Sequence record: NC_047838.1
Reading direction: 5' to 3' (one strand)
Length of the DNA: 64,000 nucleotides
The notes below the pieces were generated by a model, which saw only the letters and a program-made list of their open reading frames with translations, made no database searches and was not told the origin of the DNA. Every line of letters starts with the position of its first letter. Position 1 is the first letter of the stretch. Both the position numbers and the translations under genes were made by a program. Below, piece after piece: positions 2,901 to 33,031 of this stretch.

Positions 2901-3613
2901 GAGTTTTAGTTACAGGTCACAACGGGTTTATTGGTCGCAACGTTTTCTTAGATTGGCAACAGACCCTGGGTGTCAACAACGTTGATGGTATTGATTATCC
3001 TGATGATATTGGAGACTTCGATGGTGGTGACTACGATCTCGTTATTCACCTTGCAGCATATGCTGATATCAGAGAGAGTTTGAAGGAACCACAACTCTAT
3101 TATGAGAATAATGTGATCAAGGCAAAGAAGTTATTTGAGTGGTGTAGAAAGACAAACACAAGACTTCTGTATGCTTCCTCAAGTGCAGTAGAAGAAGAAT
3201 ACTGGGAGAATCCATATGCTATGACAAAGTGGATTAATGAAGTCATGGCTCCACCTAATTCAGTTGGTATGAGGTTCACAACTGTCTATGGTCCTGATAG
3301 TCGCCCCAATATGATGTATAGAATGCTTGAGGACAAGACAGCAAAGTATGTCACTAATCATAAGCGTGATTGGATTCATGTCAAAGATGTATGTCGTGCC
3401 ATTCATTACCTAGCATCCTCTAGTATTACGGGTCCTGTTACTATTGGTACAGGTAAATCAGTTTCTGTGAAAGCACTTGCTGATGCTATGGGTATGGGAC
3501 ACCTTCCTGTCGTGGAGGATACGCCTGGAGAGAGAATGGACAATCAAGCAGATATCTCAAGACTTAAGAAGATTGGGTGGTTCCCTACGGTAAATATTTT
3601 TGACACAGTATAA
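2897..3613 (+). CDS. NAD-dependent epimerase/dehydratase (extended SDR)
   Basis: TGHNGFIG Rossmann motif, HLAA, YASSS, YAMTK (YxxxK). Confidence 0.9.
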   Translation: MRVLVTGHNGFIGRNVFLDWQQTLGVNNVDGIDYPDDIGDFDGGDYDLVIHLAAYADIRESLKEPQLYYENNVIKAKKLFEWCRKTNTRLLYASSSAVEEEYWENPYAMTKWINEVMAPPNSVGMRFTTVYGPDSRPNMMYRMLEDKTAKYVTNHKRDWIHVKDVCRAIHYLASSSITGPVTIGTGKSVSVKALADAMGMGHLPVVEDTPGERMDNQADISRLKKIGWFPTVNIFDTV

Positions 3614-3671
3614 AGTTCTGTGTCTAGAATGTAAATTTAACAAAAACTTAATTAAGTTAGCATACGACTGC

Positions 3672-3677
3672 TAAATA
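3672..3677 (+). promoter_or_regulatory. T4-type late promoter TAAATA
   Basis: TAAATA in the intergenic region upstream of the ORF at 3747. Confidence 0.55.
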
Positions 3678-3746
3678 ATAACAGAATTGGGGATAGCAAG
3701 ATGCTCTAAACGTCTTCGTTATTTTTTATTGTAATTGGAGAGAGTC

Positions 3747-3929
3747 ATGCACAACATCATCTCACACAATCAACTAGCCGGTTGGAAACAAAGCGTGGAC
3801 CATCTAGATAGAACCATTACACACGCTAATCAACAATCTGACGCATTAAACGATTATTACAACTGCCTGATTGAGTGTGATGAGAGACAACACATCTGTA
3901 AACGAATTTGCAAAGAAGTCTTAGAGTAA
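3747..3929 (+). CDS. Small Cys-rich hypothetical protein (CxxxC-x6-CxxxC)
   Basis: ATG 3747 with GGAG upstream; MHNIISHNQLAGW...CLIECDERQHICKRIC. Confidence 0.75.
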   Translation: MHNIISHNQLAGWKQSVDHLDRTITHANQQSDALNDYYNCLIECDERQHICKRICKEVLE

Positions 3930-4013: not shown

Positions 4014-6134
4014 ATGACCGTTAAGCACGAAATCAAATCTCAACTCGCTAAACTCCTTGCAACTGAAGATCTGATCGTGGAGCACAAGCAAGTTCAAACT
4101 GCTTGCTTCAACGTTCACACTCGTGTCCTTACCCTCCCTATGTGGGAACGAGCAAGCAACACTGTCTATGATCTTCTGGTGGGTCATGAGGTGGGACATG
4201 CTCTTTTCACTCCAGATGAAGACTGGATCAAACGTAAAAGGATTCCTCCTCAATTTGTGAATGTGGTTGAGGATGCTAGAATCGAAAAGATGATGAAGCG
4301 TAAGTATGCTGGACTTGCAAAGACCTTCTACCATGGGTACAAAGAATTACACGAAGAGGATTTCTTCGCTCTATCTGATAGCGACATCGCTGATTTTAAT
4401 CTTGCTGATCGTGCAAATCTTTACTTTAAGATCGGTAATTTTCTAGACCTTTCTTTTACTGAGGAAGAAAAAACAATCATCCGTATGATTGACGGATGCG
4501 ATGACTTTGAAGATGTTCTTATTGCTGCAGAAGCACTCTACAAATTCTGCAAAAAGAAACAGGATGATGATGTAAAGAAACCTGCTAATCAAACTGAGAA
4601 CCAGCAACCTGCATCTGAGATTGTTGATGAGGATGCTAAGGAAGAAGTTCAGCATGAGTCTGATGATCAGACTGAAGATTCTCAAGAACCTATTTCTACA
4701 AGTCAAGAGATTGAATCTGACGAGAAAGATGATGACCTGCAGGTTGAGACTGCTGAGTCTCTTAGCAATAATCTGAAGGACCTGATTGACGAGAACTCTA
4801 GCGAAACTGTTTATCTGGAAGTTCCTAAGGTCAATCTTGATACTGTGATTGCCAGTAACGCTGATGTGCATGATTACATCAACTGGTGGTGGTCTCGTTA
4901 TGATGAGTTTGAAACTCCTGTCTTTGAAGAGTCTGATCAGGAGTTTGTCAAATTCAAACGTAATGCACAGAAAGAGGTAAACTATCTGGTAAAAGAGTTT
5001 GAGTGTCGCAAGGCAGCAGACTCATACGCTCGTGCCTCTACTGCTCGTACCGGTGTACTTGATACATCTAATCTGCATACCTATAAGTTCAACGAAGACC
5101 TTTTCAAGAAAGTCACAGTTCTTCCTGACGGTAAGAATCATGGTCTAGTGTTTGTCCTTGATTGGTCTGGGTCCATGTCTCAGGTCATGAAGGATACTTG
5201 TAAGCAACTGTTCAATCTGGTTTGGTTCTGTAAGAAGGTAAGCATTCCTTTTGAAGTCTATGCATTTACTAACGAGTGGAACCGTCAGTATGTTGACAAG
5301 GAAGGTGAGATTGTATTTCCTAAGAACACGCCGCACTTTGAAAAGAAAGAAGGTTTGCTTGCGGTTGATCATGACTTCTCTCTGATGAACATTCTTTCCA
5401 GTAAAGTTTCTGGTAAAGAACTAGAGAAACAAATGATTAGCATCTGGCGTCTTGCATATTCTTTCGGTCGCGCTTATTCTTCGTTGTATGCATGGCCAGA
5501 TCGTCTATCACTCTCTGGTACTCCTTTGAATGAGTCTCTTGTTTGCTTGCATCAGATCCTTCCAAAGTTTCAACGTGAAAACAAACTTCAGAAAGTTCAG
5601 TGTATTATCCTGACTGATGGTGAAGCAAATGCTCTAGCACAGTACAAAGAAATCAAACGTTATTGGGAGAAGGACTCTGAACCATACATCGGACACAAAC
5701 GTATTGAACCACACACAACTATTCTTCGTGATCGTAAACTTGGCACCACATATAGGTTTGGATATTCTTATCATGAGTTCACCGATGTGATGCTGCGTAA
5801 TCTTAAGGACAAGTTTCCTGAAGTAAACTTTATCGGTATGCGTGTTCTTGCATCTCGTGATGTTGGTAGTTTCATGCGTCTTCATAATCATCCTGGTGGT
5901 GACGAATTTCTTCGTCTTCAAAAAGAGTGGAAGAAAGAAAAGAGTTTCTGTATCAAGAACTCTGGATATGATGCATACTTTGGTTTGTCCTCAAACAACT
6001 TGTCTCAAGATTCGGAGTTTGAAGTTGATGATGGTGCTACTAAAGCAAAGATCAAATCTGCATTTGTCAAATCTTTGAAGGTTAAAAAACTAAATAAGAA
6101 AGTCCTAGGAGAGTTTATTTCTTTGGTGGCATGA
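4014..6134 (+). CDS. N-terminal HExxH metallopeptidase-like domain plus C-terminal VWA domain (CobT-like partner of MoxR ATPase)
   Basis: GHEVGH zincin motif, acidic linker, MIDAS motif LDWSGSM, GTPLNE, ILTDGE. Confidence 0.85.
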   Translation: MTVKHEIKSQLAKLLATEDLIVEHKQVQTACFNVHTRVLTLPMWERASNTVYDLLVGHEVGHALFTPDEDWIKRKRIPPQFVNVVEDARIEKMMKRKYAGLAKTFYHGYKELHEEDFFALSDSDIADFNLADRANLYFKIGNFLDLSFTEEEKTIIRMIDGCDDFEDVLIAAEALYKFCKKKQDDDVKKPANQTENQQPASEIVDEDAKEEVQHESDDQTEDSQEPISTSQEIESDEKDDDLQVETAESLSNNLKDLIDENSSETVYLEVPKVNLDTVIASNADVHDYINWWWSRYDEFETPVFEESDQEFVKFKRNAQKEVNYLVKEFECRKAADSYARASTARTGVLDTSNLHTYKFNEDLFKKVTVLPDGKNHGLVFVLDWSGSMSQVMKDTCKQLFNLVWFCKKVSIPFEVYAFTNEWNRQYVDKEGEIVFPKNTPHFEKKEGLLAVDHDFSLMNILSSKVSGKELEKQMISIWRLAYSFGRAYSSLYAWPDRLSLSGTPLNESLVCLHQILPKFQRENKLQKVQCIILTDGEANALAQYKEIKRYWEKDSEPYIGHKRIEPHTTILRDRKLGTTYRFGYSYHEFTDVMLRNLKDKFPEVNFIGMRVLASRDVGSFMRLHNHPGGDEFLRLQKEWKKEKSFCIKNSGYDAYFGLSSNNLSQDSEFEVDDGATKAKIKSAFVKSLKVKKLNKKVLGEFISLVA

Positions 6135-6280
6135 GCGACAAACAGTTACCCGAATGGAAGGTTAGAGCACTACAAGACCCTTCTGTGAACGATAAGCAAG
6201 CACGAATCATCATGGATGGTCCAAAGTGTTTGACTGATGCGTGGTTCCTCCAGGCGATGAAATTTAAATATGGACGATAA
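6131..6280 (+). CDS. Small hypothetical protein (49 aa, not in ORF track)
   Basis: ATGA overlap with the upstream stop; MSDKQLPEWKVRALQDP...MKFKYGR. Confidence 0.6.
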   Translation: MSDKQLPEWKVRALQDPSVNDKQARIIMDGPKCLTDAWFLQAMKFKYGR

Positions 6281-6328
6281 TTAGACTGTCCACCAGGGGG
6301 TCATGTGACCCCCTTTTCCGTATATAAT
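6272..6328 (+). promoter_or_regulatory. Candidate early-promoter module: GGAC..ACTGTCCAC plus -10 TATAAT
   Basis: ACTGTCCAC 6285-6293, TATAAT 6323-6328; same spacing as the module at 3936-3992. Confidence 0.55.
6295..6317 (+). terminator. Intrinsic terminator
   Basis: AGGGGGTCA-TG-TGACCCCCT-TTT. Confidence 0.7.
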
Positions 6329-6350
6329 AACTTCAGTTCAAACAAAGCAA

Positions 6351-7427
6351 ATGGGTCTGTCTAAAGAAAGCATCATCGAATGTCTTCGTGAGTCTTATGG
6401 CGAGTCTGTGACTTCTGCCGAGATCAAGGCATATTGTCAGATGAATGACTTTAACTACCAGACTGTTACTAACAAACTGACTGACTACAAAGTTGGTCGT
6501 GGCAAGTGGAACCTTGAAGTAACAAAGGAGACTGTGCAAGAACTGGAAGTATCTTATAGTGCTCCTGCCGCACTTCCGGCAATCGAACAAAACCTTATTC
6601 CTCAGAAAGATGATACCTTCGTCAGCTTTGGTAATTTCAGTGACGTTAAAAAAATTATTAAGTCCGGTCTCTTCTACCCTACGTTTATCACGGGTCTCTC
6701 GGGCAATGGTAAAACGTTTTCTGTCGAACAAGCGTGTGCCCAACTCGGACGAGAACTCATCCGAGTCAACATCACAGTAGAGACTGATGAGGACGATCTC
6801 ATCGGTGGTTTCCGTCTTGTCAACGGAGAGACTGTTTGGCACAACGGACCAGTCATCGAAGCTCTGCAACGGGGTGCTGTTCTGCTCCTTGATGAGATTG
6901 ACCTTGCATCTAACAAGATTCTTTGCCTTCAGTCCATTCTTGAAGGTAAGGGTGTATTCCTGAAGAAGATTGGCAAATGGGTTTCTCCTGCAGAGGGTTT
7001 CCAAGTGTTCGCTACTGCCAACACTAAAGGCAAAGGTTCTGATGATGGTCGCTTTATTGGCACTAATGTTCTGAATGAAGCATTCCTTGAGCGATTCCCT
7101 GTGACCTTTGAGCAAGAGTATCCTTCTGCTGCTATTGAACAGAAGATTCTTGGCAAGATCTGCAAGGATGAAGAGTTCTGCAAGCGTCTCTCTGACTGGG
7201 CAGACATCATCCGTAAGACCTTCTATGATGGTGGTATTGAGGAGATTATCTCCACTCGCCGTCTGGTTCACATCGTGAAGGCATACAGCATCTTCAACGA
7301 CAAGGCAAAGGCAATTCAAGTTTGCGTCAATCGTTTCGACGATGAAACCAAGCAGGCATTCTTGGAATTGTATGATAAAGTCGATGCTGACTTTGTGATG
7401 CCCGTTGACGAAACCCCTACAGTTTGA
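6351..7427 (+). CDS. cobS: MoxR/CobS-like AAA+ ATPase
   Basis: Walker A GLSGNGKT, Walker B LLLDEID, ATANTKG, LNEAFLERF; family usually annotated CobS in cyanophages. Confidence 0.9.
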   Translation: MGLSKESIIECLRESYGESVTSAEIKAYCQMNDFNYQTVTNKLTDYKVGRGKWNLEVTKETVQELEVSYSAPAALPAIEQNLIPQKDDTFVSFGNFSDVKKIIKSGLFYPTFITGLSGNGKTFSVEQACAQLGRELIRVNITVETDEDDLIGGFRLVNGETVWHNGPVIEALQRGAVLLLDEIDLASNKILCLQSILEGKGVFLKKIGKWVSPAEGFQVFATANTKGKGSDDGRFIGTNVLNEAFLERFPVTFEQEYPSAAIEQKILGKICKDEEFCKRLSDWADIIRKTFYDGGIEEIISTRRLVHIVKAYSIFNDKAKAIQVCVNRFDDETKQAFLELYDKVDADFVMPVDETPTV

Positions 7428-15572: not shown

Positions 15573-15742
15573 TGGACCTGCCTATTAACGATAAAGAACT
15601 TGCTACTATTGTTAGCGCACTTCGCCTTGGTGGAGATGCTGCTCTTTATCAGAAGATGACTAGAATTAAAGAGATCCGCGATGCTAACCCAGGCGGACCT
15701 TACAAAAAGATTGCCCGCGAAGAATTTGGATTTGTTATTTAA
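15572..15742 (+). CDS. Small hypothetical protein
   Basis: TAATG coupling on both sides; MDLPINDKEL... Confidence 0.65.
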   Translation: MDLPINDKELATIVSALRLGGDAALYQKMTRIKEIRDANPGGPYKKIAREEFGFVI

Positions 15743-16746
15743 TGGATTTTTTAAAAGAGATTGTAAAAGAGATTGGCGATGACTACACCAAACTCGCATC
15801 CGATATTGATGAGACTGAAACTTTTGTTGATACAGGTTCGTACATTTTTAACGGACTTGTTTCAGGGTCTATATTTGGTGGTGTATCTGGGAATAAGATT
15901 ACTGCCATTGCTGGCGAGTCTAGCACTGGCAAAACTTTCTTCAGTTTGGCAGTCGTCAAGAATTTCCTTGATTCTAATCCTGATGGTTATTGTCTATATT
16001 TTGACACTGAAGCCGCTGTTAACAAGAGTCTTATTGCAAGTCGGGGTATTGATCTAGATCGCCTGGTTGTTATCAATGTTGTTACAATTGAAGAGTTTAG
16101 AAGCAAAGCATTACGTGCTGTAGATATATACTTAAAAAAACCTGAAGACGAACGCAAACCCTGCATGTTTGTCCTAGACTCCTTGGGTATGCTTTCTACG
16201 GAGAAAGAAATTACTGACGCACTCAACGACAAACAAGTCCGCGACATGACCAAATCTCAACTGGTCAAAGGTGCGTTCCGAATGCTCACACTCAAACTTG
16301 GACAAGCAAATGTTCCGCTCATTGTCACAAATCACACATACGATGTCATCGGAGCTTACGTACCGACTAAAGAAATGGGAGGAGGCAGTGGCCTCAAGTA
16401 TGCCGCCAGTACGATCATTTATCTCTCAAAGAAAAAAGAAAAGGATGGAACGACTGTTATCGGAAACCTTATCAAAGCTAAGACTGCTAAGTCGCGTCTG
16501 AGTAAGGAGAACAAAGATGTTACGGTGCGTCTTTATTACGATGAGCGTGGTCTTGATCGATATTATGGTCTTCTGGAACTCGGTGAACTGGGTGGTCTCT
16601 GGAAGAACGTTGCTGGTCGATATGAGATAGATGGTAAGAAAGTCTATGCTAAGGCAATCTACAAGGACCCAGAACAATACTTTACTCCTGAGGTGATGGA
16701 GAAACTTGATGAGATTGCTCGTCAAGAGTTTAGTTATGGATCATGA
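15742..16746 (+). CDS. uvsX: RecA-like recombinase UvsX
   Basis: AGESSTGKT, FVLDSLG, VTNHTY, MGGGSGLKYAAS. Confidence 0.96.
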   Translation: MDFLKEIVKEIGDDYTKLASDIDETETFVDTGSYIFNGLVSGSIFGGVSGNKITAIAGESSTGKTFFSLAVVKNFLDSNPDGYCLYFDTEAAVNKSLIASRGIDLDRLVVINVVTIEEFRSKALRAVDIYLKKPEDERKPCMFVLDSLGMLSTEKEITDALNDKQVRDMTKSQLVKGAFRMLTLKLGQANVPLIVTNHTYDVIGAYVPTKEMGGGSGLKYAASTIIYLSKKKEKDGTTVIGNLIKAKTAKSRLSKENKDVTVRLYYDERGLDRYYGLLELGELGGLWKNVAGRYEIDGKKVYAKAIYKDPEQYFTPEVMEKLDEIARQEFSYGS

Positions 16747-18959: not shown

Positions 18960-19353
18960 CACCGCTAAATATCTTGAGTTCGTTGAAGGAGTGACCAGTC
19001 CTCCTAGTCTTGACTGGCCTGTGCTTGCTGCTCGACTGAGTGAACTAGAAGTTAATGACTGCAACGTCACTCAACTGATGACTGCTGCACTTGGTTTGAC
19101 TGCTGAGTCTGGTGAGTTTACTGAAGTTGTGAAGAAGATCTTCCTGCAGGGTAAACCCTACACCGAAGAGAATATCTTCCACATGAAGCGTGAACTGGGT
19201 GATATCTGCTGGTATCTTGCTCAGGCATGTATGGCACTCGACACCACCTTTGATGAAGTCATCGAGATGAATGTTGAGAAACTTCAGTCTCGCTATCCTG
19301 GTGGTAGTTTTGATGTTCACAAGTCTGAGAATCGTCAAGACGGTGACGTTTGA
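18949..19353 (+). CDS. mazG: MazG-like nucleotide pyrophosphohydrolase
   Basis: ALGLTAESGEFTEVVKK, ELGDICWY, NVEKLQSRYP. Confidence 0.92.
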   Translation: MTVDTAKYLEFVEGVTSPPSLDWPVLAARLSELEVNDCNVTQLMTAALGLTAESGEFTEVVKKIFLQGKPYTEENIFHMKRELGDICWYLAQACMALDTTFDEVIEMNVEKLQSRYPGGSFDVHKSENRQDGDV

Positions 19354-19365
19354 CCCTTCGGGGTT
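19352..19365 (+). terminator. UUCG hairpin after mazG (terminator or processing signal)
   Basis: GACCC-TTCG-GGGTT directly upstream of tRNA-Ala. Confidence 0.5.
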
Positions 19366-19367
19366 GC

Positions 19368-19440
19368 GGGGTTATAGCTCAGTTGGTAGAGCGCCTGCTT
19401 TGCAAGCAGGATGTCAGCGGTTCGAGTCCGCTTAACTCCA
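19368..19440 (+). tRNA. tRNA-Ala(UGC)
   Basis: Acceptor GGGGTTA/TAACTCC, anticodon arm CCTGC-TTTGCAA-GCAGG, TTCGA T-loop; CCA not encoded. Confidence 0.95.
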
Positions 19441-19446
19441 TAAATA
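19441..19446 (+). promoter_or_regulatory. Late promoter TAAATA
   Basis: Immediately after tRNA-Ala, 13 nt upstream of the ORF at 19460. Confidence 0.6.
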
Positions 19447-19459
19447 TCTAAAAAGGGTA

Positions 19460-20758
19460 ATGGCGAAAAGTCTCCTTGATACAGATTTATATACTAAAAC
19501 AGTCACGGTTATCAACGACAACCTTTATGATCTGGGTATGTCAATTGATACTAAAAGAACTGAAGGATCATACATCTTTGTTATGTGTGATGAGGATAGA
19601 CTCGAAACTCAAGAGTCTTTGGAGATGGAAATTGAGAGAGTTTCTGGACTTCGTTGCAGCAGAAAATATGTCAAGTCAAAATCATCAACAGATTTAACGC
19701 AGGTTGAGGGGTTTGGAAAAAAATTAAATATTGTTTTTAAAAACACCAGGGGTGGGATGCAGGAAACCACCCTCAATTCTACTATTACTGAATTGTTTCC
19801 AGCTATTGCTTTTGAAGCAGGTATTAGTACAGATCTTGATCCGGCTATATTTTATAATAAACTTGTAGAGGCAAACGATCCAAAATTTGGTGCGTATAAA
19901 AATAAGAGTGCATATGATGCGGGCAAACCATTTTTAGATAAAGCACCAACTTCCTCTAAATTTGAGGAGAAAACAACAAACGCTCAAGCAATTACAGAGT
20001 GGTTGATTGGTGAGAACAAAAGAAAAAAAATTAAAAAAGTTGTCTGGGGATATCGCAATAATTTAAAACCAGATGGAGTTGCACCCAATCACAAGGGAGA
20101 TATTTTTGCTGTTTTTGATGATGGTAATATTTTAGGAATCTCCTTGAAGGCAGGTGGAGCAAAAACTGCTGAACCACAATTTAACAGTTACGTAAGACCT
20201 ATCTTTACTTCTTTTGGAATGCTTAATGACTATGCAAAACTTGAGAAACAATCTTACGAGACTTTCTACAAAGGTATCCCTGGGATTACGCCTGAGAATA
20301 CTTATGGAAAGCAACAAATGACAAAAGTCATAGGTGCCTTTGAAAAAAATAATTTAAAACAATATGAAATGCTATATGATGCACAACTTGAATTTGTGAG
20401 AGAGTATATTTGTGACATGATGAACAAATATCCTGCCAAAGCAAAGAATTGGTTGTTGCGTGAAGTTGCAGCAGAACAAGAAGGTGTTCCCTTGATTGTT
20501 TTGAAAGCAGCAGGTAAGACAACTAAGATTGTTGACGACGAGAATGTAATTAAGGATTGTGTTCAGACATCTAAAAAAGCAAATGGAATAAAAGCATACC
20601 CTTCAAAAACATCAAAACAAAATTGGCATATTGATTTAACGTGTAGAACTCATACTACAACCTTGAATTTTTCTATTAGAACAAACAAAACTGGGATCAG
20701 TCATAAATTGGGTCAGTATATCAATCTCGCAGTTAAGTTTAACGGAATCGCTAAATAA
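19460..20758 (+). CDS. Putative PD-(D/E)xK (restriction-endonuclease-like) nuclease
   Basis: KGDIFAVFDDGNILGISLK matches D-x(10-12)-(S/E)xK; visibly AT-richer codon usage than neighbours. Confidence 0.55.
   Translation: MAKSLLDTDLYTKTVTVINDNLYDLGMSIDTKRTEGSYIFVMCDEDRLETQESLEMEIERVSGLRCSRKYVKSKSSTDLTQVEGFGKKLNIVFKNTRGGMQETTLNSTITELFPAIAFEAGISTDLDPAIFYNKLVEANDPKFGAYKNKSAYDAGKPFLDKAPTSSKFEEKTTNAQAITEWLIGENKRKKIKKVVWGYRNNLKPDGVAPNHKGDIFAVFDDGNILGISLKAGGAKTAEPQFNSYVRPIFTSFGMLNDYAKLEKQSYETFYKGIPGITPENTYGKQQMTKVIGAFEKNNLKQYEMLYDAQLEFVREYICDMMNKYPAKAKNWLLREVAAEQEGVPLIVLKAAGKTTKIVDDENVIKDCVQTSKKANGIKAYPSKTSKQNWHIDLTCRTHTTTLNFSIRTNKTGISHKLGQYINLAVKFNGIAK
20752..20757 (+). promoter_or_regulatory. Late promoter TAAATA
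   Basis: Overlaps the upstream stop, 23 nt before ATG 20781. Confidence 0.6.
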
Positions 20759-20780
20759 TGTATAAGGATTATCAATATAA

Positions 20781-22016
20781 ATGAAAAGTTTATTTCAGTT
20801 CCTAAATGAGGCGCAATCACAAGCGTCGATGCAGGCGAAAAAACTGAATTTGAAAAGCGATGGCCATGGAGGTTGGTTAGACTCCAAGGGTAAATTTGTT
20901 GCGACTACAGAAGATGGTAAGTTAAAGTTTTTAGATAAGAAACAAGCAAAAGCACAAGATGAACCAAGTGCAAAACCAAAAGCAACTCAAGCAGAACCTG
21001 AAGCAAAGACTAAGAAACCTGCAACTCAAGAGACTGGCACGAAGAAAGCAGAAGCAGGTGATGGAGATCAAACTTCTGGGGAGACAACAGAAACCCTGAC
21101 CGTTGCATTCGGTCGTTTTAATCCACCGACTGTAGGACATGGTAAGTTACTTGCCGCGGCCAAGAAAGCGTCGGCAGGTGAAGACATGAAGATCTATCCT
21201 TCACGTTCACAGGATGCTAAGAAGAATCCTCTTGATCCTGACATGAAGGTTTCGTTTATGAAGAAAATGTTCCCTGATTATGCAGAGAACATTATTAATG
21301 ATGATGAGATGAAGTCTATCTTCAACGTTCTCACCACGGCAGATGAGCAAGGGTATCGCAACGTCAACATCATCGTAGGTTCAGACCGTCAATCTGAGTT
21401 TGAAAATCTGGCAACCAAATATAATGGTGACCTGTATAACTTTGAGAACATCCGTGTTATCTCTGCTGGTGTGAGAGATGCGGATGCTGAAGGTGTTGAG
21501 GGAATGTCAGCATCTAAGATGAGAAAGGCAGTCATGGATGATGACTTTAAAGCATTCCGTAGTGGCACACCAAAAGAATTGGATGATGGCGACACTCAGG
21601 CATTATTTGATGCAGTCCGTGCTGGCATGGGTATCAAGAAAAAGAAAGCAGAAGTTGCTGAGATGTGGCAGATTGCTCCCAAGTATGATCAAAGAGGTCT
21701 GCGCGAGCAGTATGTGAACGGACTAATCTATCGTCTTGGTGATATTGTAGAAAGTCTGCATACAGGATTGGTTGGTACGATTATCCGCAGAGGAACTAAT
21801 CACCTGATCTGTGTCACGAAAGAGGACTATATGTTTAAGTCCTGGATCCGTGATGTCATGGAATACACTGAGAAGAAAATGGAACGTCGTATGAGAGTTC
21901 CTGGAAAACCAAACACACTCGAAGGAACTGGTGGTTATACGAAGAATGCTATGGCAGCAACTGGCACATCTAGTATCAAGAATTTCATAAATAAGTATAA
22001 GATTAAAAAGTCATAG
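20781..22016 (+). CDS. HIGH-superfamily nucleotidyltransferase (cyanophage cytidyltransferase; NadM/NMNAT-like fold)
   Basis: AFGRFNPPTVGH (HxGH), IIVGSDR, SASKMR; low-complexity N-terminal extension. Confidence 0.85.
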   Translation: MKSLFQFLNEAQSQASMQAKKLNLKSDGHGGWLDSKGKFVATTEDGKLKFLDKKQAKAQDEPSAKPKATQAEPEAKTKKPATQETGTKKAEAGDGDQTSGETTETLTVAFGRFNPPTVGHGKLLAAAKKASAGEDMKIYPSRSQDAKKNPLDPDMKVSFMKKMFPDYAENIINDDEMKSIFNVLTTADEQGYRNVNIIVGSDRQSEFENLATKYNGDLYNFENIRVISAGVRDADAEGVEGMSASKMRKAVMDDDFKAFRSGTPKELDDGDTQALFDAVRAGMGIKKKKAEVAEMWQIAPKYDQRGLREQYVNGLIYRLGDIVESLHTGLVGTIIRRGTNHLICVTKEDYMFKSWIRDVMEYTEKKMERRMRVPGKPNTLEGTGGYTKNAMAATGTSSIKNFINKYKIKKS

Positions 22017-22023
22017 AATTACC

Positions 22024-23628
22024 ATGTCTAATGGAATCGGTAAAAATCCTTTAAACGATATTTCAAAGGTATACTTAGATCAAATCGTTGAGAAGAAGAA
22101 AGACGATACCTATCTTGAACCTGACATGAAGAAGCGTCAGGCAAATAATGAGAAGGCACGCAAAGAACTTGCCAAGGGTCCTCAAATGAAGAACCCCCAT
22201 TTTGAATCTGCTGAGAAGAGTGGTTGGGATGCTGTCAATTCCCTCGCAGATGTATATAAGAATATGAATGAAGAAGAAGTTGATGAAGCGATGAGTTCAT
22301 ATGATAGAAATCGTAAGAGAGCAGCACAGAGAGCAGCAGACAGAAATGCTGCCAGAGCAGCAGGTAAGACAGGTGTAGTTCCTGGAGTTGGATATGTGTC
22401 TCCTAGAAAGGAGAAAGAATCATATGTTGATTCTGCAGGCACAACCAGACATAAGTCAGGCGCAAAGATGGAAGCACTTGATCCTGTCGGTAAGGAAGAC
22501 GGTGATGTTAATAATGATGGTAAGAAAGACAGCACCGATTCTTACCTGATGAAGCGCCGCAAGGCAATTGGTAATGCGATGAAAAAGAAACTCAAAGAGT
22601 CAAGATCACTCTCTGAGGTTATGACTGATGAGGTTGATGAAAAACCCATCAAAGAAAAGAACGTAAAGAATAAGATCAAAATTAGTCCTAAACTGGGTGA
22701 AGCAGTTGAGGACCTTGGTGGTGAACTGCTTGAAATGACTGAAGTTGATGAAGCAGTCTACGGTGGCACTCCTAAAGAGGAACCAAAAGACAAGCGCATG
22801 GTTGTCACTAATGCTGATAAGAAAGGAAACACACCTGCTTATCGTGCATTCAAAGCAGGTGACAAGCGTTACAAGGCTGCTGATCACATGAAAGAAGAGC
22901 AGGTTGATGAAGAGAAGAAACCTTTACCCAAGACAAAGATGTTCCGCAAAGCGGGCAACTTAGGACGTGATGCAATTAGCACTCCTATCGATCCTGAGAA
23001 ACGTCAGAAGGCATACGATCGTTCTAAGAAGATTATCAAAACTTTGAACCAGAATGAGGATGTAAGCCTGGGAAAGTCACCAGAAACCTCAGAAATTCCT
23101 GAGGAGATGTCTCCACAGGAGATTCAACTTCAAAAGAAAAAAGCAACCATCGATAAGATGATTGCTCAAAGAAGAAAGACTGAACTTGCAAAAGGTAATG
23201 CTCCTACCAAAACCATGGGTGAAGGCAAGGGAGATCCTTGCTGGGACACTCACAAGCAAGTTGGTATGAAGAAGAAAGGAAACCGTATGGTTCCTAATTG
23301 TGTTCCCAAGAATGAGGAAGTAGAACTTGATGAACGTACCCGTTTCGCAAAAGAAACAGGTAAAGATTTCAAGACTGGTAATCCATCTGAAAAGGGTGGC
23401 ACCAGAACTGGCAAGTCTGCTTTTGATAAAGTAAGTCGCGATATGCGTAAGACTGGTGGTGTAATGTCCTCCAGAGGCAAAGGTATTCAACCTCAAGGTA
23501 AGAAGAAGGTCAAAGGTGCTAAGGGTTACAAAGGTGTAACTCCTGTAGATAAGATTAGGAACAGACTTGCTCAAAAGAGAGCAGCAAAACCTAACCCCTA
23601 TAGAGCAAGAGCAGGTGAGTCCGACTGA
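22024..23628 (+). CDS. Modular Lys/Arg- and Glu-rich late protein (probable head-internal protein)
   Basis: Basic modules separated by EEEVDEA, EVDEA, EEQVDEE, EEVELDE; TAAATA at 21988-21993. Confidence 0.7.
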   Translation: MSNGIGKNPLNDISKVYLDQIVEKKKDDTYLEPDMKKRQANNEKARKELAKGPQMKNPHFESAEKSGWDAVNSLADVYKNMNEEEVDEAMSSYDRNRKRAAQRAADRNAARAAGKTGVVPGVGYVSPRKEKESYVDSAGTTRHKSGAKMEALDPVGKEDGDVNNDGKKDSTDSYLMKRRKAIGNAMKKKLKESRSLSEVMTDEVDEKPIKEKNVKNKIKISPKLGEAVEDLGGELLEMTEVDEAVYGGTPKEEPKDKRMVVTNADKKGNTPAYRAFKAGDKRYKAADHMKEEQVDEEKKPLPKTKMFRKAGNLGRDAISTPIDPEKRQKAYDRSKKIIKTLNQNEDVSLGKSPETSEIPEEMSPQEIQLQKKKATIDKMIAQRRKTELAKGNAPTKTMGEGKGDPCWDTHKQVGMKKKGNRMVPNCVPKNEEVELDERTRFAKETGKDFKTGNPSEKGGTRTGKSAFDKVSRDMRKTGGVMSSRGKGIQPQGKKKVKGAKGYKGVTPVDKIRNRLAQKRAAKPNPYRARAGESD

Positions 23629-24092
23629 TGCCTGCTCTCTCTAAAAAACAACAGCGATTCTTTGGAATCGTTCGTGCGATTCAAAAAGGAGAACAAGCAC
23701 CTACCACTCCTGAAACTGCTAAGGCAGCAAGGGATATGAAGAAGGGTGATGTAAAAGATTTTGCATCAACCAAACATAAAGGTTTGCCTGAGAAAAAGGT
23801 CAAGAAAGAAGAGACTGATTACAAGTCAAGAGATAAAATTATGAAGAAAGCAAATCCTCTTCATAAACATCTTTACAAGAACCTTCATAAGAAGGATAAG
23901 ACTGGTGATGTAAATGAAGAAAGTAAGTATGATAGGTATGATACTGAAAAGAAAAAGTTTGCCAAGACCGACAAACGAATGAAGTTTGGTAAGTTCTATG
24001 ACAAGGCAAAGGAGGCAAAGAATCGTCTTCGTCCTGGTGAAGTGAAACGTTACGACAAAAAACTTGGTAAGTACGTTTCTAATAAAGATTGA
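23628..24092 (+). CDS. Basic hypothetical protein with similar EE-linked modules
   Basis: MPALSKKQQRFFG..., KKEETD, VNEESK; TGATG coupling. Confidence 0.7.
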   Translation: MPALSKKQQRFFGIVRAIQKGEQAPTTPETAKAARDMKKGDVKDFASTKHKGLPEKKVKKEETDYKSRDKIMKKANPLHKHLYKNLHKKDKTGDVNEESKYDRYDTEKKKFAKTDKRMKFGKFYDKAKEAKNRLRPGEVKRYDKKLGKYVSNKD

Positions 24093-24122
24093 CGATATAT
24101 ATAATAGTTACTGAGGTTCATC

Positions 24123-24326
24123 ATGCTCGCATTCCTTTTACCTTTAGCATCTAAGATTATTTCTGATGCAGTTGCCAAGATTCCAGAGAACGAGGAACTT
24201 GGAGAGAAGTTAGTTGAGATCTGCTTAGTCATCTTAGGCAAGGCAGTTAAGCTTACAAAAACCGATATGGACGACCAATTATTGGAGGTCGTAACCAAAG
24301 CAATCGCTGCCCGTGAGGGTGAGTGA
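24123..24326 (+). CDS. Small hypothetical protein
   Basis: 67 aa with GAGG SD. Confidence 0.65.
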   Translation: MLAFLLPLASKIISDAVAKIPENEELGEKLVEICLVILGKAVKLTKTDMDDQLLEVVTKAIAAREGE

Positions 24327-24329
24327 TTT

Positions 24330-24337
24330 TATAAATA
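24330..24337 (+). promoter_or_regulatory. Late promoter TATAAATA
   Basis: Exact T4 late consensus upstream of 24370. Confidence 0.75.
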
Positions 24338-24369
24338 TCTAATATCAAGTAAATTTTAGAGAGAAAGAC

Positions 24370-25173
24370 ATGGCACTCTGGGGAAATACCGATGCAATTA
24401 GTGTGAAGAGTGGTGGCACCGTTGCTATTAATTATGCTACAGGGGCTGTAACTGGTGCTGGCACTAGTTTTGGTGTGAGTGGTTTTGCTGATGTTGGCGA
24501 CATCCTGAGAGTTGGAACTCGTGTAGGAACTGGTACATATTTTGGTGATGCTGTAATCGTTGCTGTTGCAAGCACAATTTCTTGCACCATCGGATCCACG
24601 ATTGGTCTGCTTCATGCTGGTCCTAATGCACACACTTCAACTGGTGCAACTACCTTCCAGGTAAGCAGACTTCCAAAATACACCACCACGCAGCCTCGCT
24701 TCAGTCAGGACACTGACTTTAATAAAGCGGATGCTACCACAGCAACCGTAACAACTGCATCTGCAACTGGTGTAGCTGGTGTTGGAACAGATATTATTCC
24801 TGTTTCAGTATTAGGTGTTGTCAATACTAATAGCGATACTCTCGTAAATGACAGCAACAACATTAAGATTTCCTCAGTTAATGCAACACAAGTAAGTCTT
24901 GCATCAACAATCTCTGCTGGAATCTCTACTGGAGACACCTTGACCTTCCAGAGAACTGCTGGTGGATATGAAGCAAATGTCTATGCTGTTGCTGAAGGTG
25001 GTAAGGAGTCTGCTGCTGGTGGACAGTACCAGGTTGACCATGCTGGTTGGGTTGGTGTTACCACATACGTTGACAACCATGGCAACCTGAGAGTCAAGAA
25101 AGAGACTCTCGTCGCGATGTCTGGTATTACTACGGGCAACGTACCTCTCTATGATTCTGATCCCCTTGCATGA
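24370..25173 (+). CDS. Probable virion structural protein (Gly/Thr/Ala-rich)
   Basis: Late promoter; MALWGNTD N-terminus and HAGWVG/ETLVAMS C-terminus resembling cyanophage structural proteins. Confidence 0.6.
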   Translation: MALWGNTDAISVKSGGTVAINYATGAVTGAGTSFGVSGFADVGDILRVGTRVGTGTYFGDAVIVAVASTISCTIGSTIGLLHAGPNAHTSTGATTFQVSRLPKYTTTQPRFSQDTDFNKADATTATVTTASATGVAGVGTDIIPVSVLGVVNTNSDTLVNDSNNIKISSVNATQVSLASTISAGISTGDTLTFQRTAGGYEANVYAVAEGGKESAAGGQYQVDHAGWVGVTTYVDNHGNLRVKKETLVAMSGITTGNVPLYDSDPLA

Positions 25174-25180
25174 TGACTGA

Positions 25181-25573
25181 ATGATCTTTAATGAATTGAA
25201 TGAGGATAACTTCCTCCTCTTCGCTATTAAAAATTATGAAAATCCTCAGGCAGTTACCAAAGAGGATTTTGATAAAGATCTAAATCACTTTAAGTATATC
25301 AAACGATTACTGAAGCGATATAAGAATACGGGTCAACTTAAGACTCATCTTCTTTTAAACCACTTTATCATTCTTTATAATATTTTTGGTGAAGCAACAA
25401 CACCCATGTTGTTCTTTAAAATTGAAGAGGATTTGTGGTCTTCCATGAAAAGTTTTATCATTTTTCTTGGAAGATTTCCTGAATATCCTCACTCATCGAT
25501 TCATGATATCCAGGTCGATATGTTTTGTTTATCGGAACTCTACAAGATCTATAATGAAAAAGAGTCCTCTTGA
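25181..25573 (+). CDS. Hypothetical protein
   Basis: 130 aa; MIFNELNEDNFLLFA...HLLLNH. Confidence 0.75.
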   Translation: MIFNELNEDNFLLFAIKNYENPQAVTKEDFDKDLNHFKYIKRLLKRYKNTGQLKTHLLLNHFIILYNIFGEATTPMLFFKIEEDLWSSMKSFIIFLGRFPEYPHSSIHDIQVDMFCLSELYKIYNEKESS

Positions 25574-31412: not shown

Positions 31413-31486
<74 letters not shown>

Positions 31487-31538
31487 CTGGGCATCAGGAG
31501 AGACCACCACCACCTCCTCTCCTGTGTAAGACCCGCTT

Positions 31539-31609
31539 GCGAGTGTGGTGTAGCGGTAACATGCGAGCCTTCCAAGCTCTTGTCACGGGTTCGATCCCCG
31601 TCACTCGCT
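31539..31609 (+). tRNA. tRNA-Gly(UCC)
   Basis: GCGAGTG/CACTCGC acceptor; loop CTTCCAA. Confidence 0.93.
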
Positions 31610-31610
31610 T

Positions 31611-31730
31611 AACGGATTAGCGACATCCGTGCTCACATCTCCGAGAGAAAAAAGAATCGGAACAACAACCCATGTGAGAGAGGGGTGGGATCCCCCTTGG
31701 TGCTACCGCTGCTGACGAGTAGCGGTTATT
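31611..31730 (+). ncRNA. Candidate multi-stem structured RNA between tRNA-Gly and tRNA-Asn
   Basis: ACGGAT/ATCCGT; CTCACAT/ATGTGAG enclosing TCCGA/TCGGA; AGGGG/CCCCT; ACCGCTGCT/AGTAGCGGT. Confidence 0.55.
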
Positions 31731-31735
31731 CTCAA

Positions 31736-31808
31736 TCCTCTATAGCTCAGTTGGTAGAGCAGGTGACTGTTAATCACCCTGTCCCTGGTTCGAGTCCAGG
31801 TGGAGGAG
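31736..31808 (+). tRNA. tRNA-Asn(GUU)
   Basis: TCCTCTA/TGGAGGA; GGTGA-CTGTTAA-TCACC. Confidence 0.95.
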
Positions 31809-31811
31809 TAC

Positions 31812-31883
31812 GGGAGTTTGGCGCAGCGGTAGCGCATCTGCTTTACACGCAGCTGGTCACTGGTTCGATCCCAGTAACTCCCA
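31812..31883 (+). tRNA. tRNA-Val(UAC)
   Basis: GGGAGTT/AACTCCC; loop TTTACAC; one mismatch at the top of the anticodon stem. Confidence 0.9.
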
Positions 31884-31907
31884 TTCCCTCTAAGAGGTCT
31901 ATGAAAA

Positions 31908-32156
31908 ATGATTACCGTAAGATGCAAAGAATGTGGAAAGGAATTGACTTCCACTAGTAAGGTTCAATTCTGTGGTTGCCCCAACCAAGTAAGAGTTGTG
32001 GACAACAAAGTTGGTGCTGTTGACTTGGATAAAGTCGTAATGGTATCTAACAACGTAGAGAATAAGATTAACAGTCATTTCTCTAGATCAGAACTCCTCT
32101 ATCAAGAGGAGAGACGTAGGCGCAAAGTTCGTAGACTGGACTTTGAAGTCAAATAA
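31908..32156 (+). CDS. Small Zn-ribbon hypothetical protein
   Basis: CKEC...CGC; GAGG SD. Confidence 0.7.
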   Translation: MITVRCKECGKELTSTSKVQFCGCPNQVRVVDNKVGAVDLDKVVMVSNNVENKINSHFSRSELLYQEERRRRKVRRLDFEVK

Positions 32157-32243
32157 GGAAGAGTGGTCGAGTGGTTTATGGCACTGGTCTTGAAAACCAG
32201 CGAGGGTGCAAGTCCTCCGTGGGTTCAAATCCCACCTCTTCCG
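32157..32243 (+). tRNA. tRNA-Ser(UGA)
   Basis: GGAAGAG/CTCTTCC; CTGGT-CTTGAAA-ACCAG; long variable arm; 87 nt. Confidence 0.95.
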
Positions 32244-32319
32244 TTATAATTTCCTAATATTTAATATTTTTGTAACAGTCTGATACACTAGATAGGTTGT
32301 AGGCAATCTTTCTACCACC

Positions 32320-32475
32320 ATGCATCCCGACGAGTTACAAAACTGGCAGATTATCAAAGAGAAATTTGAGGAAAACGGCACAACAGACAACTACTTTTAC
32401 AAGCGAGCTTGTGCTATAGTAAGCGGGCAACCGGACCCGATGAGTAATTTACCAAATGTCTCACAGGATGGATGA
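32320..32475 (+). CDS. Small hypothetical protein (51 aa, not in ORF track)
   Basis: MHPDELQNWQIIKEKFEENG...YFYKRACAI. Confidence 0.6.
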   Translation: MHPDELQNWQIIKEKFEENGTTDNYFYKRACAIVSGQPDPMSNLPNVSQDG

Positions 32476-32638
32476 GATCAAACCTGAGCACTACCTTACT
32501 AAAAAAGAGTGCCAGGAGATGATCGACAAAGCAATTGACAAACACAATAAAACTGCTACAGTTATAAGTGCCATCCTCGGCGGTATCCTCCTTGCGTTTT
32601 ATTCGCATGGTGTGCTATCATTAGTAGGTCGAGTGTAG
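32456..32638 (+). CDS. Small membrane protein
   Basis: C-terminal hydrophobic helix ISAILGGILLAF. Confidence 0.65.
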   Translation: MSHRMDEIKPEHYLTKKECQEMIDKAIDKHNKTATVISAILGGILLAFYSHGVLSLVGRV

Positions 32639-32689
32639 GCTGCGGTAACCCCCTTGGTAGTTCAGGGTTAGCGGCGACAGGAACTACCA
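32639..32689 (+). ncRNA. Candidate H-type pseudoknot immediately 5' of tRNA-Pro
   Basis: TAACCC/GGGTTA stem (extendable by GCTGC/GCGGC); loop TGGTAGTTC is complementary to downstream GAACTACCA. Confidence 0.5.
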
Positions 32690-32692
32690 CCA

Positions 32693-32766
32693 CGGGGTGT
32701 AGCTCAGTTTGGTAGAGCACTCGCTTTGGGAGCGAGTGGCCGAAGGTTCAAATCCTTTCACCCCGA
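32693..32766 (+). tRNA. tRNA-Pro(UGG)
   Basis: CGGGGTG/CACCCCG; CTCGC-TTTGGGA-GCGAG. Confidence 0.95.
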
Positions 32767-32958
32767 TTGCTTATACATAATGGCAAGATGCAATTTTTTT
32801 CTGTGGAATACTGGCAGGAGAACTGGGAAACTCTCATGGAGAGAGTGGAGAATGGGGAAACAATTGGTGTAGAGAATGAGAACGGAGATAGAGCAGTAAT
32901 GGTTCCAGCGGATGATGAAATCATACGCTTATACACAGATCACGAAGAAGGATCGTAG
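32767..32958 (+). CDS. Small hypothetical protein (true start probably internal)
   Basis: ...VEYWQENWETLMERVENGETIGV... Confidence 0.55.
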   Translation: MLIHNGKMQFFSVEYWQENWETLMERVENGETIGVENENGDRAVMVPADDEIIRLYTDHEEGS

Positions 32959-33031
32959 GGGGGTTTAGCAATCTGGTGAATGCAGCAAACTCATAATTTG
33001 CCTAAGGTGAGTTCGATCCTCACAACCCCTA
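32959..33031 (+). tRNA. tRNA with CAU anticodon (elongator Met or Ile2; not initiator)
   Basis: GGGGGTT/AACCCCT; GCAAA-CTCATAA-TTTGC lacks the three G-C pairs of initiator tRNA. Confidence 0.88.

Follow-up and report, generated by a model that had tools for sequence, protein, structure and literature searches.

A leader resembling the T4 capsid-targeting sequence on a putative nucleotidyltransferase of Synechococcus phage Bellamy

Gene 170, its start and its promoter

Synechococcus phage Bellamy (NC_047838/MF351863) is a T4-like cyanomyovirus of the Kyanoviridae with a genome of 204,930 bp; cyanomyoviruses rank with the ocean's most abundant viruses. We analyzed a 64,000-nucleotide stretch of this genome (the window, assigned to Bellamy by megablast; window position equals genome position minus 124,000) and, within it, gene 170, whose 411-residue product begins with a short leader, MKSLFQFLNE/A (the slash marks a predicted cleavage site), that resembles the capsid-targeting sequence (CTS) of the internal head proteins of phage T4. 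A sequence-only reading of the window had noted this N-terminus, a late promoter, a Lys/Ala/Thr linker and a catalytic HxGH domain, and had proposed that the leader packages the enzyme in the phage head. The open reading frame (ORF) read from ATG 20781 does begin with these residues. The features of the locus are listed here, with scores (predicted local distance difference test, pLDDT) from an AlphaFold model of the full-length protein (80-sequence alignment, mean pLDDT 84.8):

20751..20757, + strand: late promoter motif CTAAATA (T4-type late −10 element), overlapping the stop codon of gene 169
20760..20764, + strand: probable transcript 5′ end (metatranscriptome contig ends at 20760-20762)
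20764..20768, + strand: Shine-Dalgarno sequence AAGGA, read from the sequence, 12 nt before the ATG
20781..22016, + strand: coding sequence of 411 residues, cyanophage core gene T4-GC190/PHROG 395, TxGH-variant HxGH-type nucleotidyltransferase
20781..20810, + strand: leader, residues 1-10, with a predicted protease site after Glu10 (L8-N9-E10/A11); helix at residues 4-10 (pLDDT 73 for block 1-10)
20811..20960, + strand: N-module, residues 11-60, a helix and a three-stranded sheet with a conserved G-D-G-H-G-G-W core (pLDDT 94-96)
20961..21089, + strand: residues 61-103 of a disordered low-complexity linker (about residues 52-103) rich in Lys, Ala, Thr, Glu and Pro, and also Gln
21090..21680, + strand: Rossmann-type nucleotidyltransferase domain, residues 104-300 (pLDDT ~97)
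21129-21140, + strand: catalytic motif T117-V-G-H120, the TxGH variant found in phosphopantetheine adenylyltransferase (PPAT)
21507-21524, + strand: second motif, S243-A-S-K-M-R248
21690..21875, + strand: small C-terminal beta-barrel domain, residues 304-365, strands within 322-361 (pLDDT 94-97)
21876..22013, + strand: C-terminal helical tail, residues 366-411, helices 383-394 and 399-410 (pLDDT 47-77 by ten-residue block)

The protein matches the PHROG 395 profile over its full length (E = 1.5e-102) and is 42% identical over 390 residues, nearly its full length, to SSM1_190 of phage S-SM1. By these comparisons it is an orthologue of T4-GC190 and an ordinary member of a known cyanophage core gene, which goes by the family names "cytidylyltransferase" and "NMNAT-like" (after nicotinamide mononucleotide adenylyltransferase, NMNAT). 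The GenBank record MF351863 carries only the product label 'hypothetical protein'.

In RefSeq NC_047838, gene 170 ("cytidyltransferase") begins at M17 (window 20829), which drops 16 conserved residues including the leader. A tblastn search found the protein in 562 phage records, with at least 80% of its length covered in 383, and most cyanomyovirus alignments began at query residue 1. The annotated start coincides with the start of the leader, or lies a few codons upstream of it, in 13 fetched homologues (from S-SM2, Sf-CH8, S-SRM01, S-SCSM2R, P-SSM2, P-SSM3, S-CAM9, S-SSM5, S-H25, S-RIM2, S-MbCM6, ACG-2014f, and S-SM1). Of the 120 variants with at least 84% identity listed by a word-indexed protein search, 119 have at least 400 residues and one is the 395-residue RefSeq product; E10 and A11 are 100% conserved in these 119 environmental variants. 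M17, by contrast with the leader, is not conserved in more distant relatives (alignment of cluster representatives), and the sequence upstream of 20829 has no Shine-Dalgarno element comparable to AAGGA. Because homologues are annotated from the equivalent of M1, alignments extend from residue 1 and the E10/A11 pair is fixed, ATG 20781 is, as judged from these comparisons, the true start; since the leader is conserved and M17 is not, the start at 20829 is by the same token wrong, and the leader analysis corrects a truncated RefSeq gene model.

The TAAATA string at 20752-20757 lies 23 nt upstream of the ATG. It occurs 147 times in the Bellamy genome on both strands (0.36 per kb per strand), and for 44 of 215 crude ORFs, against about two expected, its end falls 10-35 nt before the ORF, with a peak at 15-29 nt; the great majority of the genes so marked are structural (sheath, tube, portal, scaffold, fibres, and baseplate). 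Given this enrichment and the structural genes involved, TAAATA is the late-promoter signal of Bellamy, which upholds the earlier identification of a late promoter before the ORF. The phage encodes a gp55-type late sigma factor (gene 141), and the motif is kept at the same place in S-SM2, Sf-CH8, S-SCSM2R, and ACG-2014f. In a single study, three samples yielded metatranscriptome (Logan) contigs whose ends fall at 20760-20762 and which leave the upstream gene 169 almost uncovered; contigs of this kind cannot prove 5′ ends and give no expression levels, so these ends are suggestive of a transcript that starts just after the late motif and contains ATG 20781. A scan of 19300-24400 for sigma-70 promoters showed no enrichment (eight found, 10.9 expected). 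Late expression of gene 170 is thus supported.

The leader and its occurrence in virion proteins

Conservation of the leader across homologues had been suggested as a check by the sequence-only reading, and the leader proved to be family-wide. In an alignment of 26 linker-bearing cluster representatives E10 is invariant and F7 nearly so. The consensus M-K-x-F-x-x-F-L-x-E-A holds in diverse cyanomyoviruses with conservative changes only (S-CAM9 is deviant), and also across 50%-identity cluster representatives; position 4 is L in Bellamy and F in most homologues. Among the 119 environmental variants the leader and the catalytic domain show equal conservation (0.94), and the linker is the least conserved segment (0.79).

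An exhaustive HMMER search returned 4306 clusters of relatives at E <= 1e-3. Strict leader patterns match 94 of the 138 listed representatives that have a complete N-terminus and the catalytic motif, as against 4 of 215 Bellamy ORFs, and many of the remainder are plainly forms of the leader in which just the basic residue is missing. The distance from the leader to the enzyme varies greatly. In 101 representatives the catalytic motif falls within the first 30 residues, and 67 of these match the strict patterns with the leader directly before strand 1; in the cyanophage forms the module and linker add about 95 residues in between; and multi-enzyme fusions retain a leader-like N-terminus although kinase or Pol-beta-type domains push the start of the nucleotidyltransferase domain to residue 292-524. 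The same leader, usually with the module, heads unrelated proteins as well: it is found on proteins similar to APH and protein kinases in S-N03 and S-CREM2, and leader and module together head a 796-residue family (PHROG 3561) of ACG-2014f. Since it stays at residue 1 while its downstream partner changes, the leader is, on this distribution, locked to the N-terminus and not to the catalytic domain, and appears to behave like a signal and not like part of the catalytic fold. It also stands alone: in ORF6, ORF13, and ORF154 of S-CREM2 low-complexity sequence follows it directly, without the module.

An unannotated copy with the same leader and module was seen in S-SKS1 (HQ633071; positions 2501-3750 of the piece examined), a Llyrvirus outside the Kyanoviridae. 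Its reading frame is interrupted further on, after which other frames seem to carry the nucleotidyltransferase part, so that a pseudogene or a sequencing frameshift is possible.

In T4, targeting by the CTS depends mainly on residues 4 and 7 and processing on residues 8 and 10, with the protease gp21 cleaving after L/I-x-E (Black review, PMC9026906). Internal proteins IPII and IPIII begin M-K-T-Y-Q-E-F-I-A-E-A and IPI begins M-K-T-F-K-E-F (NC_000866). Bellamy has L4, F7, L8, and E10 at the functional positions, and the cleavage motif is present as L8-N9-E10 followed by A11. A position matrix built from residues 2-12 of 80 metagenomic N-termini of the family was applied to 254 crude T4 ORFs and ranked IPII (16.8 bits), IPIII (14.8), and IPI (12.7) as the top three; in Bellamy it gave gene 170 20.0 bits, against 6.8 for the runner-up ORF. 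In the opposite direction, a pattern derived from T4 and anchored at residue 1 (hydrophobic at 4 and 7, aliphatic at 8, Glu at 10) matched 2 of 243 ORFs in Bellamy, 4 of 254 in T4, and 6 of 208 in S-CREM2. The T4 matches are IPII, IPIII, gp61.1, and gp24, the last annotated in the T4 record as cleaved by gp21. The agreement at the mapped positions and the rank of the T4 internal proteins bear out the likeness to the T4 CTS that had been claimed, and by these comparisons the match in gene 170 is not a chance feature.

Neither scan revealed another leader-bearing gene in Bellamy. The second pattern match, a UvsX/RecA-like protein (15742-16746; genome 139742-140746) that begins M-D-F-L-K-E-I-V-K-E, scores only 3.7 bits in the matrix and was judged a chance match. 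In T4 the matrix placed gp61.1 fourth of 254 (12.3 bits); this uncharacterized 54-residue protein has the N-terminus M-K-T-F-K-E-F-I-K-E, its gene (NC_000866, 18966-19130) adjoins the primase gene, and it may be an unrecognized packaged peptide.

The machinery that would read such a signal is encoded. Gene 131 is a gp21-type protease (75 of 212 positions, or 35%, identical to T4 gp21), gene 132 is a gp22-type scaffold, and a capsid protein homologous to gp23 is present. When the capsid maturation sites are aligned, M-L-N-E/Q of Bellamy corresponds to F-L-T-E/A of T4 gp23; the Bellamy site contains the same L-N-E as the gene 170 leader.

Relatives of the enzyme recur in purified cyanophage particles, as reported in four virion studies. 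In S-SM1 the T4-GC190 protein, a long form with the leader, gave 25 peptide counts, compared with 18 for the portal protein, 22 for gp22, and 8 for gp21 (Sullivan et al. 2010, PMC3037559). Mass spectrometry (MS) also identified homologues in virions of S-SZBM1 (PMC9146016), of S-SCSM1 and, by citation, S-CBWM1 (PMC9602691), and of S-CREM2 (PMC10665884). The leaderless homologue of PA5oct, which serves as a negative control, is not flagged as MS-detected although its neighbors are.

The whole genome of S-CREM2 permits a broader comparison. The T4-derived pattern occurs in 6 of its 208 ORFs, and five of the six are among the 52 virion proteins identified by MS (odds ratio 16, Fisher p = 0.004): ORF6 (an S-adenosylmethionine [SAM] hydrolase), ORF13, ORF14 (a kinase), ORF136, and ORF154 (the T4-GC190 enzyme). 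In S-SM1 both proteins with the pattern, the T4-GC190 enzyme and gp5, are virion proteins, the gp5 match probably being due to chance; a matrix threshold test in the same phage gave one false positive outside the virion, a hypothetical protein at 128733-129185. A virion-detected 'Cas9-like' nuclease of S-CREM2 (ORF12; 4205-6814 of the piece examined) contains the G-H-G module and an F-M-A-E/A site at residues 23-26, a position that suggests a longer propeptide or a mis-called start.

The enzyme and its genomic neighborhood

The leader is followed in the model by a compact module, a flexible linker and the enzyme proper. A fold search with the isolated N-terminal 62 residues against the PDB found no recognizable relative of the module (best Z = 4.3), which also heads the kinases and PHROG 3561 proteins. 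The Lys/Ala/Thr linker described by the sequence-only reading is indeed of low complexity, with pLDDT below 50 for residues 62-98, and the catalytic HxGH domain that it predicted is present in the TxGH variant form, within a Rossmann domain. P115, P116, and H120 are invariant family-wide, and S243, S245, and R248 are at least 90% conserved; since both motifs (T-x-G-H and S-x-S-x-x-R) are maintained throughout the family, the enzyme is probably active.

Structural comparison of the Rossmann domain gave Z = 14.1 with PPAT (root-mean-square deviation 2.8 Å over 152 residues, VIA-align) and Z = 12.8-13.2 with NadD, NadM, and archaeal NMNAT, at identities of 10-16% overall; many PPAT and NMNAT chains align over residues 103-286 with Z = 12.6-14.1 and Foldseek E values near 1e-5. 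Sequence searches were less informative. The Pfam family PF01467 (CTP_transf_like) scored 17.8 bits, below its gathering threshold of 21 (some relatives exceed it, one with 28 bits), so that superfamily membership rests on fold and motifs. NCBIfam gave no equivalog match and only sub-threshold hits (TIGR00482, 12.5 bits against a cut-off of 112); the PDB gave no match by sequence and only a weak one by profile (3gmi, E = 0.057). The modeled fold nevertheless places the protein in the HIGH-signature nucleotidyltransferase superfamily, with a fold of the PPAT/NMNAT/GCT type. Like PPAT (CoaD), NadD, NadM, and archaeal NMNAT, it combines the Rossmann fold with TxGH and SxSxxR-type motifs; unlike them, it has additional N- and C-terminal domains and retains only the low identity noted above.

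The structural scores for PPAT and NMNAT are tied, so the fold does not settle the substrate, and the NMNAT label used in S-SCSM1 and S-SCSM2R is annotation only. We take the G-R-F-N-P-P-T-x-G-H motif of gene 170 to recall archaeal and NadM-type NMNATs, as a lead and not a test. Nicotinamide mononucleotide or nicotinic acid mononucleotide is the best single guess, though a tentative one, and another phosphorylated small molecule would be equally conceivable; a macromolecular target seems unlikely, as does a role that does not involve catalysis.

The beta-barrel domain matches PHROG 4808 (E = 3.8e-09) and forms a separate small ORF in Syn1 and S-RSM4 (1740-2018 and 1746-2000, respectively, of the pieces examined); the label 'ribonucleotide reductase alpha subunit' attached to PHROG 4808/T4-GC534 appears to be a propagated mis-annotation. 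Some metagenomic relatives fuse the nucleotidyltransferase to an AAA_33/zeta-toxin-like kinase and a Pol-beta-type nucleotidyltransferase, to a PAP2 phosphatase, or to DUF5824, hinting at a multi-step phospho-nucleotidyl pathway.

Gene 170 is located in the replication module, after genes for a DnaB-like helicase and MazG and a tRNA-Ala gene; hypothetical genes, primase, and NrdAB follow. Its immediate neighbors are

19460..20758, + strand: gene 169 (432 residues, PHROG 2496), preceded by a late motif of its own (19441-19446)
22024..25573, + strand: genes 171-175, downstream, with late motifs for 171 (21988-21993) and 174 (24332-24337)

The interval 19441-25573 thus forms a late-gene island (genes 169, 170, 171, and 174) within the replication module, syntenic with SSM1_188-197 of S-SM1; the region of genes 170-175 corresponds to SSM1_190-196. 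Virion proteins are common around the homologues. The S-SM1 counterparts of genes 171 and 172 belong to this class, the flanking S-SM1 products GC1453, GC1454, GC1455, GC425, and GC426 were virion-detected (PMC3037559), and so was the upstream neighbor of the S-SZBM1 enzyme (ORF139; PMC9146016).

Genes 171 and 172 are very rich in Lys and Arg and could encode internal head proteins. Gene 171 (22024-23628, 534 residues) contains a calcium-binding, dockerin-like D-x-D-x-N-x-D-G motif, for which Pfam Dockerin_1 is sub-threshold, and shares short modules with SSM1_191 and with PHROG 764, whose 'cytidyltransferase' label looks spurious. The window also contains eight tRNA genes (Ala, Arg, Gly, Asn, Val, Ser, Pro, and Met) at 19368-19440 and 31413-33031; the first base after the end of tRNA-Ala is also the first of the gene 169 late motif.

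Proposed packaging, alternative explanations and comparison with T4

We consider it probable that the product of gene 170 is a late-made nucleotidyltransferase that its leader loads into the prohead as the T4 CTS does, and that is delivered with the genome. The gp55-type sigma factor (gene 141) would drive transcription from CTAAATA at 20751-20757. The leader would then act as the targeting determinant, docking the protein onto the scaffolding core, with the hydrophobic residues at positions 4 and 7 together with L8 and E10 as the key positions, and the gp21-type protease (gene 131) would cut after Glu10 to leave a mature protein that begins at Ala11. The enzyme would remain in the DNA-filled head, enter the next host with the genome, as the T4 precedents IPI and Alt suggest, and act before any phage gene is expressed. 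The late motif, the protease and scaffold genes and the homologues found in virions support the earlier interpretation of a metabolic-type enzyme expressed late with a packaging leader. An anti-defence role, for example the restoration of NAD against NAD-depleting systems, is speculation.

Several points weigh against this proposal. Proteome authors caution that CsCl purification may leave abundant late proteins behind (PMC9602691, PMC10665884), and the proteomes of S-PM2 and Syn9, which were shallower studies, did not detect the long-form homologues of those phages. The enrichment in S-CREM2 rests on five proteins, and both the pattern and the matrix were defined after leaders had been seen. 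Cleavage between E10 and A11 is a prediction from the motif, and that a folded protein of 44 kDa would be ejected is extrapolated from the example of T4 Alt. Residues 4-10 are helical in the AlphaFold model, and in a model of the isolated N-terminus a single helix spans residues 4-21, so the scissile bond may not be extended, although pLDDT there is modest (58-73). Finally, leaderless short forms occur in Syn1, S-RSM4, RaK2, and PA5oct, and therefore the enzyme can work without packaging.

The same helix, which in the model runs on into that of the module, invites the explanation that the leader simply forms an amphipathic helix at the N-terminus, with a part in structure or regulation (oligomerization, autoinhibition, or translation efficiency), and that the virion signal reflects carry-over, a concern of the proteome authors themselves, or other determinants; the weak profile match to 3gmi, an unrelated HIGH enzyme with a similar helix before strand 1, could be read in the same way. 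We regard this as unlikely. The module is absent from S-CREM2 ORF6, ORF13, and ORF154, where disordered acidic or basic stretches follow the leader, and kinases and a SAM hydrolase carry the leader as well. The leader holds residue 1 in proteins whose nucleotidyltransferase domain lies hundreds of residues further on, it is distinctive enough to single out the T4 internal proteins, and it is enriched among virion proteins. Still more radically, translation could begin at M17, as RefSeq has it, with the leader as untranslated sequence, and a second TATAAAT-like string at 20774-20781 overlaps the ATG. This is very improbable, because the leader is kept at the protein level in phages down to 40% identity, with annotated starts at M1, and it sits poorly with the transcript contigs that begin at about 20760 and with the lack of conservation and of a Shine-Dalgarno sequence noted above for M17.

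Packaging by the leader could also serve the particle itself, the protein acting in assembly as a core or scaffold accessory, as a DNA-associated protein, or as a modifier of DNA or head proteins, and not being injected. T4 IPIII contributes to head morphogenesis (PMC9026906), the Lys-rich linker could bind DNA, and the gene lies in an island of virion-protein genes whose S-SM1 counterparts have been called structural. The ATP or CTP and the small-molecule substrates that HIGH-type enzymes normally require are missing from a filled head; the strong conservation of the catalytic motifs also weighs against such a role, and the SAM hydrolase, kinase, and nuclease packaged with the S-CREM2 homologue look host-directed. 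A role confined to the particle is accordingly given little weight, and delivery with the genome remains the preferred explanation.

Packaging as such is not a new idea, since virion detection has been published and carriage of the enzyme in the virion and its entry into the host have already been proposed as a hypothesis (PMC9602691, PMC10665884); the mechanism of targeting and cleavage for T4-GC190 appears to be new. Literature searches for a link between CTSs or propeptides and cyanophages or the T4-GC190 family returned only a T4 review and found no recognition that one leader marks several packaged enzymes, and the searched passages of PMC3037559, PMC9146016, PMC9602691, and PMC10665884 do not mention a leader or protease site for the enzyme. 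T4-GC190 is a core gene whose product has appeared in virion proteomes for 15 years without an explanation of how it gets there; a T4-like leader would explain why its relatives recur in purified particles, and it turns "possible contamination" into a testable prediction, a mature N-terminus at Ala11. It also links the enzyme to the tagged SAM hydrolase, kinases, and nuclease, which look like tools for time-zero takeover or counter-defence.

More generally, aquatic T4-like phages as a whole may use the M-K-x-F-x-x-F-L-x-E leader, frequently joined to the 50-residue module, as a portable signal for capsid targeting, one that defines head-packaged, host-directed enzymes; we advance this with some reserve, as a possibility that could fall either way. 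If it is true, the packaged set could be read from sequence (nucleotidyltransferase, protein or small-molecule kinases, SAM hydrolase, and Cas9-like nuclease), the injected proteins of each phage could be predicted from its genome, and the leader would offer a handle for loading chosen proteins into cyanophage heads. The T4-like leader of the T4-GC190 family itself indicates a CTS system far older and wider than the T-even internal proteins.

The kind of mechanism is known from T4, in which a CTS is combined with processing by gp21. Bellamy shares with the T4 internal proteins an N-terminal leader of about 10 residues that opens with M-K, is aromatic or hydrophobic at positions 4 and 7 and aliphatic at position 8, and ends in Glu10 before an Ala, as well as late genes and homologues of gp21, gp22, and gp23; as with those proteins, relatives of gene 170 are found in virions. 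The T4 internal proteins are small and basic, whereas the Bellamy cargo is a 44-kDa enzyme of three domains, its leader is often adjoined by a conserved 50-residue module of no known fold, and the lineage concerned is that of marine and freshwater T4-like phages and not T-evens; cleavage and ejection in Bellamy are predicted by analogy. A functional parallel is T4 Alt, an ADP-ribosyltransferase (ART) of which about 40 copies are packaged, trimmed by gp21, injected, and active on the host at time zero (PMC9026906). Alt differs from the HIGH-type nucleotidyltransferase of gene 170 in its ART fold and chemistry, and its propeptides are not CTSs of the internal-protein type; like the product proposed here for gene 170, it is a head-borne enzyme of a T4-type phage that the prohead protease processes.

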